Positions 1,375 to 25,889 of a stretch of 64,000 nt of DNA are shown in pieces. Numbering within the stretch: the stretch's first letter is position 1; every line of letters starts with the position of its first letter. The stretch lies in the sequence record OR496884.1; one strand, written 5' to 3'. The notes under the pieces were generated by a model. The model did not search any database and was not told where the DNA came from. It worked only from the letters and a program-made list of their open reading frames with translations. A program made the position numbers and the translations under genes.

Positions 1375-1692
1375 TTAGTAAAATGTTAGCTGAAAACGCA
1401 TATGACCTAAATTAACTAACGTTGCGTTATCAGGAATGGGAAGTGTCGCAATTTGATCGTCAACATAATCTTTAACTATTTCATAAACTGCACTATGGCT
1501 AAAAGACAAGTTACGATCAAAAGGACTTGGTGGAAGTGGTATACCGTTATCTAAACAAGCATCTTGAATAACAGAATACGCTAAACTTTCTGGGCATTCA
1601 GAAAGTGTTTTTAAATCTTGGCTGTGACCCGCTAAATTAAAAATAAGTTGCATAAATTTATAGAGAGGTAGAAACCTACCTCTCTTCTCCAT
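1375..1692 (-). CDS. hypothetical protein
   Basis: 105-aa ORF directly downstream of tubulin. Confidence 0.75.
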   Translation of the reverse strand: MEKRGRFLPLYKFMQLIFNLAGHSQDLKTLSECPESLAYSVIQDACLDNGIPLPPSPFDRNLSFSHSAVYEIVKDYVDDQIATLPIPDNATLVNLGHMRFQLTFY

Positions 1693-3591: not shown

Positions 3592-3609
3592 ATAATATCT
3601 ATTTGAAAA
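3592..3609 (-). promoter_or_regulatory. putative phage early promoter motif
   Basis: TTTTCAAATAGATATTAT on minus strand; near-copies at 9745, 13236, 16564, 23739, 48017, 49222, 50315, mostly intergenic and upstream of minus-strand genes. Confidence 0.6.
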
Positions 3610-16578: not shown

Positions 16579-16805
16579 TTATTTTTAGATATTCAATTTC
16601 TAACTAAACAAACAAAACCCTTTCCCTACCCAGAGATCTCTCTCCAGATAGGTTTAATTGAATTTTCTTTTCTAATTTACTTTTTCTTTCAAACTTCTCA
16701 AATGAACTCGTATATGGAATAAAGGAAGTTATTCACTTCGTTCATAAGCTATCCTTATCCATATACTCATTTTCTATAATTTACTAATATAGGGTTTCAC
16801 CCGGC

Positions 16806-16870
16806 ATTGACTTGGACTTAGGTAATTGGACCCGCTCTTGACTGACGGACCCCACTTGACTGATGACCCC
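16806..16870. repeat. short direct repeats (iteron-like) in a long intergenic region
   Basis: CTTGACTGACGGACCCC (16837-16853) and CTTGACTGATGACCCC (16855-16870), plus degenerate ATTGACTTGGAC (16806) and ATTGGACCCG (16825). Confidence 0.6.
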
Positions 16871-17024
16871 CTCTTTCTCCCCCTTCTACACTATTTTGGT
16901 AGCGTAAAAATAAGGAAAGAAAGTAAAGAAAAACATCAGAAAAGTAGAATTCATCAATCAAGAAAAGAAACCAATTACATATAATATATATTCACACTAA
17001 AAAATAAACAAAAATAAACAAAAA

Positions 17025-17051
17025 AATAAGTGAGAGTTTCTCTCACTTATT
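17025..17051 (-). terminator. intrinsic terminator
   Basis: Perfect stem AATAAGTGAGAG/CTCTCACTTATT with long T tail on minus strand. Confidence 0.85.
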
Positions 17052-17058
17052 TAATTGA

Positions 17059-17451
17059 TTAAAATGGAAGACGATTGTCGTTGACAAAAACATTTTCTGT
17101 CATTTTACGAATGTCGTCTTCACTACCAAGATCGTCCCTAATGATTTTGAAAAATCCTAGGAAAGGATAAATCAATAACTCACTAATAGGTTTCCTTTTA
17201 TTGCAATTAAATAAAATACTTTTATAATGAGATTCTGGTGTTATCCAGAAAATAAAGTCTGTGTCAGGTTTTATTACACTGAAATGGAACTCTGGAAATT
17301 CTTCAATAAACTTGATTTGTTCCAAAGTAACAATTGGTTCGCCAAACTTTAATGGTGATTTTGAAACATAAACCCCTCCATTAATTTTTACGCAAAAGAA
17401 TTGATCAATCAAATCTTGAAGACTAACAAATTTACGGATACTTTCTTTCAT
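17059..17451 (-). CDS. hypothetical protein
   Basis: 130-aa ORF, GAAGGA SD; N-terminus resembles ORF 13998..14549. Confidence 0.8.
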   Translation of the reverse strand: MKESIRKFVSLQDLIDQFFCVKINGGVYVSKSPLKFGEPIVTLEQIKFIEEFPEFHFSVIKPDTDFIFWITPESHYKSILFNCNKRKPISELLIYPFLGFFKIIRDDLGSEDDIRKMTENVFVNDNRLPF

Positions 17452-17503
17452 AAGTCCTTCCTGATAAATTAAAAATACAAATGGGGGTGTTGTATTTTTG
17501 TAT

Positions 17504-18001
17504 CTACAGTGTTAAAACTATTGACGTATTTTGAAAAAGATTTAACGAATAATAATCATTGGTGATTTCGGTCATAGGTCCTTTGCACCAAGGTTTCCAA
17601 TCATTGGTTTTTATTTCAAAAACGTTATCTCTTTTTGCAAACGCTCTCAGCCGTTCATACGTTTCTTTGGTAAACTTATGATCTGGTTGGAAAATGTCAT
17701 CAATTCCATGAACGGTCAATACTTTTTGAAACATGTATTGTTGAACAAGGTTAGCGACAGCAGACATCCCATGGTAATGAAACTGTTCCAAATCAAGTTT
17801 ACCCAAAAGACTCTCTTTACGTGTTGGCGTATCGACAAGACTAACTTCAAAAGTTTCTTTACTTATCCGTTTGACATTAACTGAAAACATTTCAGTTAAC
17901 TTATAAAACATAGAAAACCCGATTTTTGTTTCAATTACGGGGAGTGAAATCAGTTGTTTAAAAACACTTAATGGGGTGACCGTGGACATATCTAACTCCA
18001 T
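17504..18001 (-). CDS. hypothetical protein
   Basis: 165-aa ORF. Confidence 0.78.
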   Translation of the reverse strand: MELDMSTVTPLSVFKQLISLPVIETKIGFSMFYKLTEMFSVNVKRISKETFEVSLVDTPTRKESLLGKLDLEQFHYHGMSAVANLVQQYMFQKVLTVHGIDDIFQPDHKFTKETYERLRAFAKRDNVFEIKTNDWKPWCKGPMTEITNDYYSLNLFQNTSIVLTL

Positions 18002-23069: not shown

Positions 23070-23801
23070 TTATTTAAAAATATCTTCCAGTGTACAACGT
23101 TCCCCCATTTCACCATCAACTTCATTAGCCAACATACCGTTAATTACCCGGCCTTTGTAAGATTTAAATTTATCAGATCGTTCATGGTCTTTCTTAACCA
23201 AAAGTTCAAACACCCCGGCATAGTTTCCGGTTGAACGATTAGTTTCGGTAACATAATAACCGTGAATAATATCGTAAACGATACCGCGTTTTACACGGTT
23301 GTATTCAATCATGTCCTTGACCATGTCTTCCAATAGCTTAGACATCCGCTGGTTGGAGTATTGATCAATAAACGCACCCATGACCGCTCCATGTTCTTCA
23401 AAGTCTTCAGTCAACGTGTAGCGAAAATCAGTGTGATTAAAATCATTAATCAATTTACTGATCATTCCTGATTTTGGACGAGTGAATTTAGTCTCACCAC
23501 GAGACGTTAGATAAAACATGATGAATCGCTGTTTGTTATTTAAAAAGAAACTAACAGCTTTAATATTATTGGTAGGAAAGTTTTCCAGCTTCCAATGAGG
23601 TATGTGATTAACATCGATGGAAAGTTCCTTCACCTCAATGTTGGAAAACAGGTGACCCAATGCATAACAGATTCGACTTTTAATTGTTTCAAAATCCATG
23701 ACATTATCCTTAGATATTAATATTGGTTTTACAATTTGATAATATCTATTTATAAATTTATGGAAATAGACTATTGTATGTAACAAAAAGCATTTTCTCA
23801 A
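23070..23801 (-). CDS. hypothetical protein (true start likely MDFETIK near 23700)
   Basis: A promoter-like motif at 23739-23756 and an AAGGA SD lie inside the 5' part of the called ORF. Confidence 0.75.
   Translation of the reverse strand: MRKCFLLHTIVYFHKFINRYYQIVKPILISKDNVMDFETIKSRICYALGHLFSNIEVKELSIDVNHIPHWKLENFPTNNIKAVSFFLNNKQRFIMFYLTSRGETKFTRPKSGMISKLINDFNHTDFRYTLTEDFEEHGAVMGAFIDQYSNQRMSKLLEDMVKDMIEYNRVKRGIVYDIIHGYYVTETNRSTGNYAGVFELLVKKDHERSDKFKSYKGRVINGMLANEVDGEMGERCTLEDIFK
23739..23756 (-). promoter_or_regulatory. putative phage early promoter motif
   Basis: TTTATAAATAGATATTAT. Confidence 0.55.
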
Positions 23802-23864
23802 TAATTATTTCAATAAGTCATTATTGAGAATTGTGCTTTCCGCTAAGCATGTTTCATAAGTAGG

Positions 23865-23892
23865 TTGCAATACTTTACATCTCTAGTAATAT
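23865..23892 (+). promoter_or_regulatory. possible promoter for the ncRNA/tRNA locus
   Basis: TTGCAA-N16-TAATAT sigma70-like pair just before the first hairpin; could be chance in AT-rich DNA. Confidence 0.3.
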
Positions 23893-23895
23893 ATT

Positions 23896-24575
23896 GTGAG
23901 GACCCCTCCTAGTCCTCACTTTCATAATAGATATTTAAAATAAGTGTTTATTATGAAAGTCTACCTTCGCCAGACACTTGACTTTCAATCTCATTGTTTT
24001 ATCCCTTTCATAATAAAAGTGTGCATCCTTTCGCTACCGATGTGCACTTCTTAATGTATTCTTTGTCAGAGTTCATTAAGAAGCGTAACCTGTTGCGATT
24101 CATTGTCAAATCCTTATGCATGTACTAAGCTGAGGGAGAGGCTCGACTCCCTCATCTTCTTAATAAGTATTTTAATGAGTATTTATTAAGAAGGTCTTAC
24201 ATTGCGGTGATGCCTTCTTTGCATTCTTTTTCATTTCTTAGCCATTTTCAATTTTTCTGTATAAGCCAAATAGTATTTCTGTTTGGCTCTTTTTAATATC
24301 TATTTATTAAAGTGTATATTAAAAAGATAATTTAGGAGTCTTTGTGTTTTTCTTTGATTTAACAATAGGCTAGGACATGGCTGTTAAATCTTTCCTTTTG
24401 GCATAAAGACTCCGCTTCATTTGATCTAACTCACTTATACCACCTAAAGAGTTTACGAACCATATATTGGTCGACAGCTTAACTAAAGGTTAAAGATGTA
24501 GTTAAATCATTTTCTCCAGATTGTAAAGATCTGGATTTATTAAAAACATACTGTAAAAATATATAGTATGTAACA
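23896..24575 (+). ncRNA. putative structured ncRNA segment A (hairpin array)
   Basis: At least ten stems of 7-19 bp in succession; G-U pairs are valid only on the plus strand; no ORF over 61 aa. Confidence 0.6.
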
Positions 24576-24579
24576 AAAT

Positions 24580-24663
24580 GCGGGTATGGTGAAATCGGTA
24601 GACACAAGGGACTTAAAATCCCTCGCTTATGGCGTGCCAGTTCGATTCTGGCTATCCGCACCA
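24580..24663 (+). tRNA. tRNA-Leu (anticodon TAA)
   Basis: Acceptor GCGGGTA/TATCCGC, anticodon arm AGGGA-CTTAAAA-TCCCT, long variable arm, GTTCGATT T-loop, encoded CCA. Confidence 0.96.
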
Positions 24664-24674
24664 CTTTCGAATCC

Positions 24675-24950
24675 CCGAGACGGTTATCAGTAAGTCTATA
24701 AACGACTTGGTGCGGCTGATATACCGTTCTCGGCCCTATTAGAGTTAATCAGGTTCTTAACTTAAACAAACTGATGTTTGACTTAGGCGAAGAGGGCAAC
24801 TTGATTAGCTCAAACACATTTGGATCTATCTCACGAAATTGTCAAACTGACGTTTACAAGCAAGTCACTCCGACTCGAATTGGAACAGTTAATTGTAAAC
24901 AATTTATACGGGACTCAATAGTTCACCGTGACGACAAAGAGTGGATCCAA
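24675..24950 (+). ncRNA. putative structured ncRNA segment B (between tRNA-Leu and tRNA-Asn)
   Basis: Nested stems: 24675-24733 (16 bp, 2 bulges), 24742-24753/24800-24811, 24820-24826/24943-24949, 24852-24859/24893-24900. Confidence 0.55.
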
Positions 24951-24960
24951 TGTTATCTCT

Positions 24961-25118: not shown

Positions 25119-25120
25119 TA

Positions 25121-25266
25121 TTTCATTCCAGATTTATCTGGTTCATACATCGGTACCGTAAGGTATAACCAAATGCACCTAAGTTCATAACTGAATACGG
25201 TGACGGTTTACATGAAACGTTCTGAACGGAAACTAAGACGAACGACGTGTGTATGATAATATGAAA
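25121..25266 (+). ncRNA. putative structured ncRNA segment C
   Basis: Closing stems TTTCAT/ATGAAA and TCATACA/TGTATGA enclose ACCGTA/TACGGT and small hairpins. Confidence 0.45.
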
Positions 25267-25276
25267 GCGTATTAAT

Positions 25277-25354
25277 GAGAACTATAGACGTATGGAAAGT
25301 CGCCTAATATCACTTATAATTAGGATTGTCTTGGTTCGAATCCAAAAGTTCTCA
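25277..25354 (+). pseudogene. tRNA-like element with a 10-nt anticodon loop and no CCA
   Basis: Acceptor GAGAACT/AGTTCTC, GAC/GTC D-stem with GG in the loop, CTAAT-ATCACTTATA-ATTAG arm, TTGG-TTCGAAT-CCAA T-arm. Confidence 0.6.
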
Positions 25355-25360
25355 TCCCTC

Positions 25361-25785
25361 TTCCTTCTATCTGTGCATTCATCAGCCTCCGTTGTTTGCT
25401 CCTCCATTGTCATCGTCGTCAATACAGGTAGAAGGAAACTTATTTCGTTGTACCGTATCGCCCAAGCAGGTGGTTTAATACAACGAATAATCTTGCTTTC
25501 GAGCAAGATAAATTGAGTAACCGTGCTTAATGATAACGGCATCGTCTATGATGACTATCAAGATTGTTTTATAGATGTTGTAGGTTGCTGCCAGTGCCAA
25601 GAAGGTCTGGGGCATTAACGAGTACAAAAAGAAGCTCGACTACGGACTAAACACTTTAAGACATGAACACGGTAAGCCAAAGCTAGTCACTTTGGAAGTT
25701 GTTCAGCAATGTTCAGCCTATTATCCCTTTCAGGATCCTTTACCAAAGGCCACGGTGGGGTTACCTAAAAGAGATAATGGGAAGA
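25361..25785 (+). ncRNA. putative structured ncRNA segment D
   Basis: 14-bp stem around a C-rich loop, further hairpins including a TTCG-capped 8-bp stem, long-range pairings and a possible pseudoknot; ends before a terminator. Confidence 0.55.
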
Positions 25786-25806
25786 ATATTTATTTATATA
25801 ACAATA

Positions 25807-25845
25807 CCTACCTAATCCTAAACAGGATTAGGTAGGGTTTTTGTT
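25807..25845 (+). terminator. intrinsic terminator closing the tRNA/ncRNA locus
   Basis: CCTACCTAATCCT/AGGATTAGGTAGG followed by GTTTTTGTTTGTTT. Confidence 0.85.
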
Positions 25846-25889
25846 TGTTTAACGATATTTTGAACTAACCGAATTAAAAGGTCTTTATT

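Follow-up and report, generated by a model that had tools for sequence, protein, structure and literature searches.

The object of this analysis is a stretch of non-coding DNA in Aeromonas phage AerS_266 (OR496884.1), which appears to encode an array of RNA hairpins joined by linkers that resemble the antisense of translation start regions. It was analysed within a window of 64,000 nucleotides (nt), meaning the whole stretch of DNA studied, and unless stated otherwise positions are those of the window (record position = window position + 124,000). AerS_266 is a 243.7-kb phiKZ-like jumbo phage that encodes chimallin, PhuZ and two multisubunit RNA polymerases (PMC10673249). It is a chimallivirus, that is, a phage of the nucleus-forming type.

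The segment of interest, 23961-24263, sits in an 880-nt gap without annotation (23701-24579). The gap is bordered on the left by a leftward gene, with its start at 23699, and on the right by the gene for tRNA-Leu (24580), which is followed by tRNA-Asn and tRNA-Asp; the non-coding island that includes the tRNAs extends to 25889. The array would be the first gene of this island of tRNAs and non-coding RNA (ncRNA), and its position is the point at which leftward and rightward transcription units diverge, in DNA that is AT-rich and dense in hairpins. It has no annotation in any of the phage records examined, except for one small minus-strand coding sequence (CDS) in phage OBP.

Organisation of the RNA unit

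On the basis of the sequence, 23961-24263 is very probably the core of one ncRNA gene of about 515 nt, which would run from approximately 23780 to 24295 on the plus strand (Table 1). Fold prediction gives nine local hairpins in the region, H0 followed by the pairs H1+H2, H3+H4, H5+H6 and H7+H8. Each of these four pairs forms a module in which a GC-rich hairpin is followed at once by an AU hairpin, and in the fourth module the GC hairpin serves as the intrinsic terminator. In the AU hairpins the 5' arm is rich in pyrimidines (CUUUCAUAAU, CUUCUUAAUG, UCUUCUUAAUAAG and CUUUUUAAUAU) and the 3' arm is rich in purines. Between the hairpin pairs lie the linkers L1, L2 and L3, which are 50-68 nt long and also pyrimidine-rich. 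The GC-plus-AU design is found at this single locus in the 243-kb genome, and the suggestion that it is the general terminator style of the phage was rejected for this reason.

A first-pass annotation, made from the sequence alone, had described three unpaired linkers that are bracketed by strong stems and read in reverse complement like initiation regions, together with a first hairpin loop resembling an anti-Shine-Dalgarno (anti-SD) sequence. The coordinates and sequences that it gave for all four elements are exact. The reverse complement of 23980-24009 (inside 23961-24016) is GAAAGGGATAAAACA-ATG-AGA-TTG-AAA-GTC, that of 24084-24130 holds TAAGGATTTGACA-ATG-AAT-CGC-AAC, and 24194-24263 gives AAAATTGAAA-ATG-GCT-AAG-AAA-TGA, overlapped by ATG-AAA-AAG-AAT. 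The bracketing stems are H2 to H7, and the anti-SD-like loop (CCCTCCTA) belongs to H1, the first GC hairpin. Orthologues of this loop read ACCUCCUA, UCUCCCUAA, UCUCCUCCUCCUAG and AACUCCUCC, and several of these GC-hairpin loops (CCCUCCUA, ACCUCCUA, UCUCCUCCUCCUAG and AACUCCUCC) are anti-SD-like.

Table 1 Features of the proposed RNA gene of AerS_266 (window positions).
Feature	Position	Strand	Remarks
TATG promoter core (putative)	23777..23780	+	G23780 is the predicted first transcribed base; extended motif TATTGTATGTAACAAAAAGC
H0, long 5' hairpin	23787..23839	+	From fold predictions; over three phages, 92% of cells are paired, with a single compensatory pair
L0, linker	23840..23895	+	Conserved CCGCUAAG; anti-SD-like CUCU..GUAAUA element right before module 1
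H1, GC hairpin of module 1	23896..23919	+	Loop CCCUCCUA (23904-23911) anti-SD-like; three compensatory pairs in CF8
H2, AU hairpin of module 1	23921..23957	+	Two compensatory pairs; several changes from G·U to A-U
L1, linker	23958..24017	+	Anti-start segment 23989-24007 (UCUCAUUGUUUUAUCCCUU); minus-strand score 12.0; predicted probability of being unpaired 0.75
H3, GC hairpin of module 2	24018..24048	+	Contains tandem U·G/G·U pairs that the plus strand alone can form
H4, AU hairpin of module 2	24049..24081	+	Arms CUUCUUAAUG...CAUUAAGAAG
L2, linker	24082..24131	+	Anti-start segment 24098-24116 (AUUCAUUGUCAAAUCCUUA); minus-strand score 11.4; predicted probability of being unpaired 0.58
H5, GC hairpin of module 3	24132..24153	+	Two compensatory pairs, including an AU/GU/GC series
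H6, AU hairpin of module 3	24154..24195	+	Arms UCUUCUUAAUAAG...UUAUUAAGAAGG; two compensatory pairs; five one-sided changes with pairing kept
L3, U/C-rich linker	24196..24263	+	Cross-genus motif UUCUUUUUCAU; anti-start segment 24240-24258; predicted probability of being unpaired 0.83
H7 and run CUUUUU, intrinsic terminator	24264..24294	+	Hairpin 24264-24288, 10 pairs (terminator scan); two compensatory pairs
H8, AU palindrome	24289..24326	+	5' arm is the U-run of the terminator; H7 and H8 form the fourth module, of the same design

Conservation

Close relatives are ZPAH34 (89% identity) and CF8 (74%). With the neighbouring virion-protein gene as an anchor, the same layout was located at the same genomic site in further Aeromonas phages (AhC3_1; the Ferozepurvirus members pAEv1810, PS1, AVP1 and ACP1; and Ludhianavirus D6) and in phages of other hosts, namely Pseudomonas OBP, Klebsiella N1M2, Edwardsiella pEt-SU, Erwinia AH04 and Shewanella SXP01. 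The array is conserved over at least eight phage genera and six host genera, and its design forms a family in the OBP-like clade of jumbo phages. Genera differ in having from two to four internal modules, which fits the expectation for semi-independent units.

An alignment of AerS_266, ZPAH34 and CF8 contains 13 compensatory pairs, in which both sides have changed and the bases still pair. Column shuffles give 5.5±1.6 such pairs, none of 500 shuffles reached 13, and controls with a slid register give 1-2. These compensatory base changes indicate that the hairpins of the array are real. Linkers that vary between stems that are kept, the pattern that the first-pass annotation had proposed to look for in relatives, is what the alignment contains: the hairpins are conserved, with compensatory pairs, and the linkers are the fastest-evolving parts of the array.

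Individual elements differ considerably in this respect. L0 has 79-91% identity within the genus, with CUCC(N)GUAAU at the same position in AhC3_1, Ferozepurvirus and D6. H3 is 100% identical in the three phages (its UG and GU pairs are alignment columns 266-267), while H4 in CF8 has one G-C pair changed to G·U and one pair altered on both sides. The arm motif CUUCUUAAU of H4 is also present in AhC3_1 and OBP, with related forms UUCUUAAU and CUUUCUUUAU in the remaining relatives. The 5' half of L2 (24082-24105) is invariant in the three phages; its 3' half is 46% identical in CF8 and is there again anti-SD. In L3, UUUUCUUUU(U)CAU is retained in CF8, AhC3_1 and Ferozepurvirus, and UUAUUUUUCAU occurs in D6. 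A palindrome like H8 is found in AhC3_1, Ferozepurvirus, D6, OBP, N1M2 and SXP01. An alternative-pairing switch was also considered, in which the 3' arm of H2 (23947-23959) would pair with the 3' end of L1 (24005-24017); the match is perfect over 13 nt in AerS_266, but it is not kept in ZPAH34 or CF8.

The array does not correspond to a catalogued family. No Rfam 15 family reaches its gathering threshold in 23700-24579, the best being VrrA, which scores 19.2 bits (E=3.6) where 50 are required. Searches of seven related loci against Rfam, at gathering thresholds and at E≤10, returned tRNAs only, and the GOLLD and ROOL models likewise gave no match. In IMG/VR, neither exact core words nor flanking-protein searches gave a match; 99 stretches there carry the arm pattern CTTCTTAAT-N-ATTAAGAAG, of which nhmmer confirmed OBP alone, the others being chance palindromes. 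A literature search found no paper that describes the array.

Anti-start segments in the linkers

The resemblance of the linkers to initiation regions was scored with a position-weight matrix built from 250 annotated gene starts of AerS_266, in which the Shine-Dalgarno (SD) sequence lies at -12 to -8 and true starts have a median score of 9.7. The minus-strand sites whose AUG lies at 23994, 24103 and 24245 score 12.0, 11.4 and 9.9 respectively, and L3 holds a further site with a score of 8.3. The likeness noticed in the first-pass annotation is therefore upheld, each linker reaching at least the median of annotated starts, beyond what shuffles give. In the 551 nt from 23780 to 24330, three minus-strand sites reach the true-start median, against 0.07 expected from the genome-wide false-positive rate and 0.37 in dinucleotide shuffles of the array region (P=0.007). 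Elsewhere in the island, the remaining 1,288 nt of non-coding sequence contain no such minus-strand site.

The signal is general to the family. Counted over the homologous RNA of 10 phages, minus-strand sites number 22 and plus-strand sites 2, whereas shuffles give 1.9±1.3 with a maximum of 6, so that the anti-start content is enriched approximately 12-fold over shuffles and is strand-specific. N1M2 and pEt-SU have two more sites each; the partial regions of AH04 and SXP01 have none. In plus-strand orientation, the sites have in common the element 5'-(U)UCAUUG(U)-N(6-9)-UCCU/CUCC-3'. L1 is the most variable element of all (65% and 40% identity, with indels), and over this linker AerS_266 and CF8 are separated by 20 gap columns at 40% identity; nevertheless both have a strong anti-SD and anti-AUG, each scoring 12.0. 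The anti-start arrangement is a family trait, which persists where the linker sequence has otherwise diverged.

The segments are also predicted to be accessible. The linkers had been described as unpaired, and thermodynamic prediction agrees, giving probabilities of being unpaired of 0.58-0.83 for L1 to L3. Across eight phages, the anti-start segments have predicted ensemble values of 0.5-0.83 in 16 of 17 cases, compared to 0.35-0.40 for the whole RNA; the exception is one site in OBP, at 0.07.

Promoter, terminator and transcribed strand

The left edge of the array carries TTGTATGTAACAAAA, with TATG at 23777-80, and a TATG motif recurs at 24567-24570, 10 nt 5' of tRNA-Leu. The form TTAT(A/T)TATGT(A/G)A is retained at the left edge in every relative. 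The late promoters of phiKZ have the sequence T(-3)ATG(+1) (PMC7598289), and the TATG at 23777-80 agrees with this pattern, making it a candidate promoter for a phiKZ-type non-virion RNA polymerase. At the other end there is a GC-rich hairpin followed by a U-run (24264-24288 and CTTTTT), and a GC hairpin with CUUUU(U) is found on the plus strand in every relative whose array 3' end was captured. Thus, to judge by these signals, the strand that carries the antisense segments has its own promoter and its own intrinsic terminator. A parallel is provided by the abundant 141-nt ncRNA that phiKZ produces ahead of its tRNA-Leu cluster (PMC10914365). Counted from the G of TATTATGTAGAAA, the terminator of this ncRNA is 138-145 nt away, consistent with the published length.

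Folding energies point to the same strand. The plus strand folds more stably than the minus strand in all 10 phages, by 8-44 kcal/mol, and its energy is also the better in four further relatives. Counts of G·U pairs over the 10 phages are 12-33 for the plus strand vs 4-21 for the minus, and Z-scores against shuffles are -6.0 to -8.1 vs -4.7 to -6.3, with the plus strand lower in all six lineages. Several aligned pairs pass through AU, GU and GC states, and are paired only on the plus strand. Because of the promoter motif, the phiKZ ncRNA, the terminator, the asymmetry of energies and G·U pairs, and this series of pair states, the plus strand is very probably the functional RNA strand, as the first-pass annotation had supposed. 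We infer that the non-virion RNA polymerase of the phage would transcribe the array from the TATG promoter, and that the transcript would end at the H7 terminator.

A transcript from this strand need not act in trans. It could be a cis-acting cascade of weak terminators and RNase III-type AU stems that meters the flow of polymerase, or processing, into the tRNA island. Each GC hairpin is indeed followed by a U-rich tract (UUUCAU, CUUCUUAAU, UCUUCUUAAU and CUUUUUAAU), the terminator scan also picks H5, and the long AU stems, of 13-19 pairs, are plausible RNase III substrates. The 5' untranslated region ncRNAs of phiKZ, which come from premature termination, offer a parallel (PMC10914365). Against this, a separate copy of TATG precedes tRNA-Leu by 10 nt, the array is divided from the tRNA by two good terminators (24264-88 and 24515-35), and the conserved anti-start arrangement of the linkers is left unexplained. 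We consider a purely cis-acting role very unlikely.

The locus might also function as DNA, as a replication origin, a single-strand initiation site or a cruciform region at the point where transcription diverges. It is AT-rich, hairpin-dense and placed between divergent units, compensatory inverted repeats would fit DNA hairpins equally, and single-stranded DNA tolerates G·T. This is nonetheless extremely improbable: the conserved promoter motif and a canonical terminator flank the unit exactly, there are no direct iterons and the hairpin-arm copies differ within one phage, and the strand-specific anti-start signal has no rationale at the level of DNA.

Minus-strand reading frames

The start-like sites could alternatively be what they resemble. 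If the minus strand were expressed, they would be real SD-AUG sites, serving either fast-evolving micro-peptides or a decoy that loads or titrates 30S subunits and carries throw-away open reading frames (ORFs). They have an SD and a start codon at proper spacing and they score like real gene starts (9.9-12.0 vs 9.7). The SD, spacing and AUG are kept while the downstream sequence drifts, which a pure ribosome-binding function predicts likewise. On the minus strand H0 is followed by UUUUUG, and the annotators of OBP called a minus-strand CDS, OBP_015, inside the array.

The ORFs themselves do not behave as genes. Those behind the minus-strand AUGs encode 1-32 amino acids (aa), lengths that look random for AT-rich sequence, and orthologous ORFs differ (19/26/5 aa, 20/-/5 aa and 21/14 aa), with ATG-TAG in Ferozepurvirus. 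Indels shift the frame in PS1 (a 7-nt deletion) and in ZPAH34 (8+1 nt). A single ORF, of 31 aa (24008-24103), is kept throughout the genus. It lies on an 84-nt stretch in which five substitutions between AerS_266 and CF8 are the sole changes; all five alter the amino acid and all are at the top of hairpin H4, a pattern that fits a constraint on RNA and not on protein. Neither conserved length, frame and peptide nor a synonymous bias was found, and it is unlikely that these ORFs are genes. OBP_015 (43 aa, minus strand) lies at 336-467 of the extracted OBP stretch, inside the array copy; it was probably annotated in error, being comparable to the micro-ORFs of AerS_266.

One caveat on the choice of strand is that, in AerS_266 and ZPAH34, the leftward early-promoter motif has a partial copy of 12 nt (AAATAGATATTA) at 24294-24307, which points leftwards through the array. 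Genome-wide there are 11 good copies of the full motif, AAATAGATATTAT(C/T)...TGT. The copy at 24294 lacks the downstream half TAT(C/T)...TGT that all 11 possess, and it is not conserved in CF8, Ferozepurvirus or N1M2, so we rejected it as a minus-strand promoter. In addition, CF8 has no U-run after H0, and the G·U asymmetry and energies favour the plus strand in every lineage. Expression of the minus strand therefore seems rather improbable.

It is worth adding that the motif AAATAGATATTAT(C/T)-N3-TTGTA (minus-strand reading) lies 30-60 nt upstream of leftward genes, at window positions 3593, 9746, 16565 and 23740, and is probably the early (virion RNA polymerase) promoter of AerS_266. A motif of this type is also present at the left edge of the array in Ferozepurvirus, D6, OBP, N1M2 and pEt-SU.

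Proposed function and search for targets

We hypothesise that the array RNA acts in trans as a multivalent antisense against translation initiation regions, a reading to which we assign a probability of roughly 35-40%. The exposed linkers and some of the hairpin loops would present 5'-CAU-(6-9 nt)-UCCU/CUCC-3', in the polarity and at the spacing by which the anti-SD of 16S rRNA and the initiator anticodon read mRNA. Flanking bases specific to each lineage would anneal to particular mRNAs at the SD-AUG region and so block 30S binding, while the hairpins would hold the linkers open, act as insulators and shield the RNA from nucleases. This would explain the conserved spacing and polarity as well as the fast evolution of the linkers.

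Several results weigh against this proposal. The longest Watson-Crick runs of L0, L1 and L2 with the 250 start regions of the phage are 10 nt, equal to shuffles. L3 has a run of 14 nt, within 21 base pairs that include two G·U, spanning the SD to +7 of a queC-like gene (record position 17526, minus strand). Since the antisense of L3 itself resembles a start region, the fair null is a comparison of starts with starts, and 11% of real starts share at least 14 nt with another start. The queC-like gene (16627-17526 of OR496884.1) is moreover an accessory gene: it is absent from ZPAH34, was not found in CF8 and has a distant match in AhC3_1. We therefore rejected it as a target of L3. At the point of the deletion, ZPAH34 retains a remnant of the SD and start of this gene (AAAAGGAAAATTGAAATTGGCTAAAC; 1330-1360 of the extracted ZPAH34 stretch), which is similar to the L3 antisense.

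In eight phages, the starts of neighbouring genes show no consistent pairing with the array. The invariant core of L2, scanned against 185,579 representative bacterial genomes, gave no exact match as a 20-mer and 35 as a 17-mer, which is the chance level, with none in Aeromonas. A generic anti-SD and CAU (approximately 5+3 base pairs) is too weak in trans without extra pairing, and with hosts in six bacterial genera it is unlikely that all share one host target. Long-range intramolecular helices may take up parts of the linkers: RNAalifold proposes short ones that use parts of L0, L2 and L3, with parts of L0 pairing to L2 and L3. The candidate helices would join 23842-47 to 24236-41, 23861-68 to 24086-93 and 24096-100 to 24201-05. 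No compensatory double changes are found in these helices. A helix predicted by RNAalifold in Ferozepurvirus, which would close the 5' end onto L3, was rejected because by eye it is weak in AerS_266 and impossible in CF8, and this leaves the conserved UUUUCUUUUUCAU unexplained.

Thus the anatomy of the array fits the silencing array suggested in the first-pass annotation, but for none of L0 to L3 was a target found in the phage genome that goes beyond chance and is kept in relatives. The complementarity of at least 12 nt to phage start regions that it had proposed as a check is absent from L0-L2 (10 nt), and the 14 nt of L3 falls within the start-vs-start null. Its description of several distinct guides is likewise not established, as the linkers share the motif CAUUG, 6-9 nt, UCCU or CUCC. 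Because no phage start region matches beyond chance, any targets of the array would more likely lie in the host than in the phage.

A common motif can also be read differently. The plus-strand RNA could be a scaffold or sponge for many copies of a host or phage RNA-binding protein (for example Hfq, ribosomal protein S1, RNase E/degradosome or a phage factor), and the anti-start appearance would then be a by-product of a binding motif rich in pyrimidines (UUCAUUGU...UCCUU). The linkers do carry a common motif and not unrelated sequences; conservation of the AU-arm motif (CUUCUUAAU, UUCUUAAU and CUUUCUUUAU) across genera suggests sequence-specific recognition; and a variable number of modules fits a role in valency or dosage. 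The usual layout for Hfq binding is a U-rich stretch followed by a terminator hairpin, which L3 and H7 match. The failure to find a base-pairing target among phage starts, in the L2-core genome scans or at neighbouring genes is a further point in its favour. On the other hand, composition is not sufficient (1.9 sites in dinucleotide shuffles vs 22 observed), the SD-to-AUG spacing is ribosome-like where a protein site need not be, and the sequence names no partner protein. We regard both the protein sponge and this origin of the anti-start appearance as unlikely.

The antisense proposal can be taken further. Chimalliviruses of the OBP-like clade might possess an RNA-only, modular, multiplex translational silencer, in which whole hairpin modules are gained and lost and the linkers are retuned in each lineage. 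The reader frame (anti-AUG and anti-SD, at the spacing of the ribosome) would be fixed, and the surrounding bases would be retuned to the start regions of the host or of competing phages. We think this full form improbable, although if true it would be a natural counterpart of designed anti-start-site oligomers. Programmable antisense oligomers in phage functional genomics are the subject of a 2025 Nature paper (PMC12571901), which is a possible lead.

Comparison with known RNAs

RNAIII of Staphylococcus aureus is a 514-nt multi-hairpin regulator whose C-rich loops pair with the SD regions of several mRNAs. The array is similar in size, and likewise has many independent hairpins and several pyrimidine-rich, anti-SD-like unpaired elements in one RNA. 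Occlusion of the start region of more than one mRNA, which RNAIII carries out, is for the array a proposal. There is no homology of sequence or structure; RNAIII uses kissing loops, whereas the array has inter-hairpin linkers with an anti-AUG at ribosome-like spacing; and RNAIII has proven targets and encodes a peptide, whereas the array is phage-borne and the searches made found no target for it. Enterobacterial small RNAs (sRNAs) of the MicF type pair across the SD and AUG of one mRNA. As in these, the antisense segment of the array spans the SD, spacer and start codon, and there is a 3' terminator hairpin. MicF differs in having about 90 nt, one seed and a clear conserved target; the array has three or four segments, none with a target that passes the chance test.

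In T4, the stable RNAs species 1 and 2 (rnaC and rnaD) lie in the tRNA cluster, and GOLLD and ROOL adjoin tRNAs in phages and prophages. All of these resemble the array in being structured RNAs next to phage tRNA genes. The array is of beads-on-a-string type with a variable number of modules, in contrast to a fixed, ornate fold, and no Rfam model, those of GOLLD and ROOL included, matches it in the window or in the relatives scanned.

In the same setting, an sRNA of 201phi2-1 lies directly 5' of a tRNA (PMC11512511). Like the array, this sRNA and the 141-nt ncRNA of phiKZ (upstream of PHIKZ302, tRNA-Leu cluster) belong to nucleus-forming jumbo phages and stand at the head of a tRNA cluster, co-oriented with it. 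The phiKZ ncRNA also has a TATG-type start (TATTATGTAGAAA vs TTGTATGTAACAAAA in the array), CU-rich hairpin loops and an intrinsic terminator. It is a quarter of the length, and contains neither GC-plus-AU modules nor CAU-spacer-UCCU linkers. No similarity between the two was detected by nhmmer or blastn, and homology is not established.

Two further classes were compared. CsrB, RsmY and RsmZ share with the array many hairpins, a short motif repeated in loops and linkers, and a variable repeat number. They display GGA, whereas the array displays UCC/CUCC on the favoured plus strand and has its GGA-type motifs on the minus strand; multiple GGA motifs were therefore not found on the strand that is probably transcribed. 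Nor does the array have the constant direct repeats of a CRISPR-like array. Within one phage the hairpins vary in both sequence and length, and no direct-repeat family covers them; what recurs is the design and the AU-arm motif only. A 'putative CRISPR-associated endoribonuclease' (window 1375-1692, minus strand, 105 aa) was considered as a Cas-like processing enzyme and rejected, having no Pfam match at E≤0.01. By analogy, the array would be nearest to RNAIII and MicF-type sRNAs in working principle, and to the tRNA-adjacent ncRNAs of phiKZ, 201phi2-1 and T4 in setting.

Other elements of the tRNA island

Between the array terminator and the tRNA-Leu promoter there is a second conserved structured unit (24327-24540, plus strand), with its own terminator (24515-24535 and TTTATT). 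Its stem AGGAGTCTTT/AAAGACTCC has a compensatory change in ZPAH34 and CF8 (GGGATC/GATCCC), and a similar unit follows the array in AhC3_1 (approximately 2610-2710 of the extracted stretch). It has no match in Rfam. Immediately 5' of tRNA-Leu, 24540-24581 on the plus strand is a 42-nt repeat of the array promoter region, including GTATGTAACAAAA. This gives the tRNA cluster a TATG-type promoter of its own and a leader about 10 nt long.

The spacer between tRNA-Leu and tRNA-Asn (24664-24960, plus strand) is 297 nt long and has no annotation. Relatives have HNH endonuclease genes or other tRNAs at comparable positions, and the island is therefore a hotspot of gain and loss. Further on, 25277-25354 (plus strand), inside a 770-nt unannotated gap (25119-25889), has a weak tRNA-like match of 29.6 bits against a threshold of 29; it was not called by ARAGORN, and may be a decayed or unusual tRNA. 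Finally, OBP (1920-2140) and SXP01 (1085-1300, both in extracted stretches) share a hairpin-rich element just 5' of tRNA-Asn, including ...CCCCGGCGGCCAGCCGGTTAAAC..TAGGCGGAATCCTAATGAGGGG, for which no Rfam match was found.

Significance

Even if the silencing model fails, the array represents a new class of structured RNA for Rfam-type curation. It also allows at least one probable mis-annotation (OBP_015) to be corrected, and provides conserved promoter and terminator signals for a poorly studied clade. In nucleus-forming jumbo phages, transcription takes place apart from translation, and the phage's own mRNAs are favoured on host ribosomes by a mechanism that is partly understood. The array is a concrete candidate, open to inexpensive tests, for control at the RNA level during infection, either of translation or of a factor that binds start sites.

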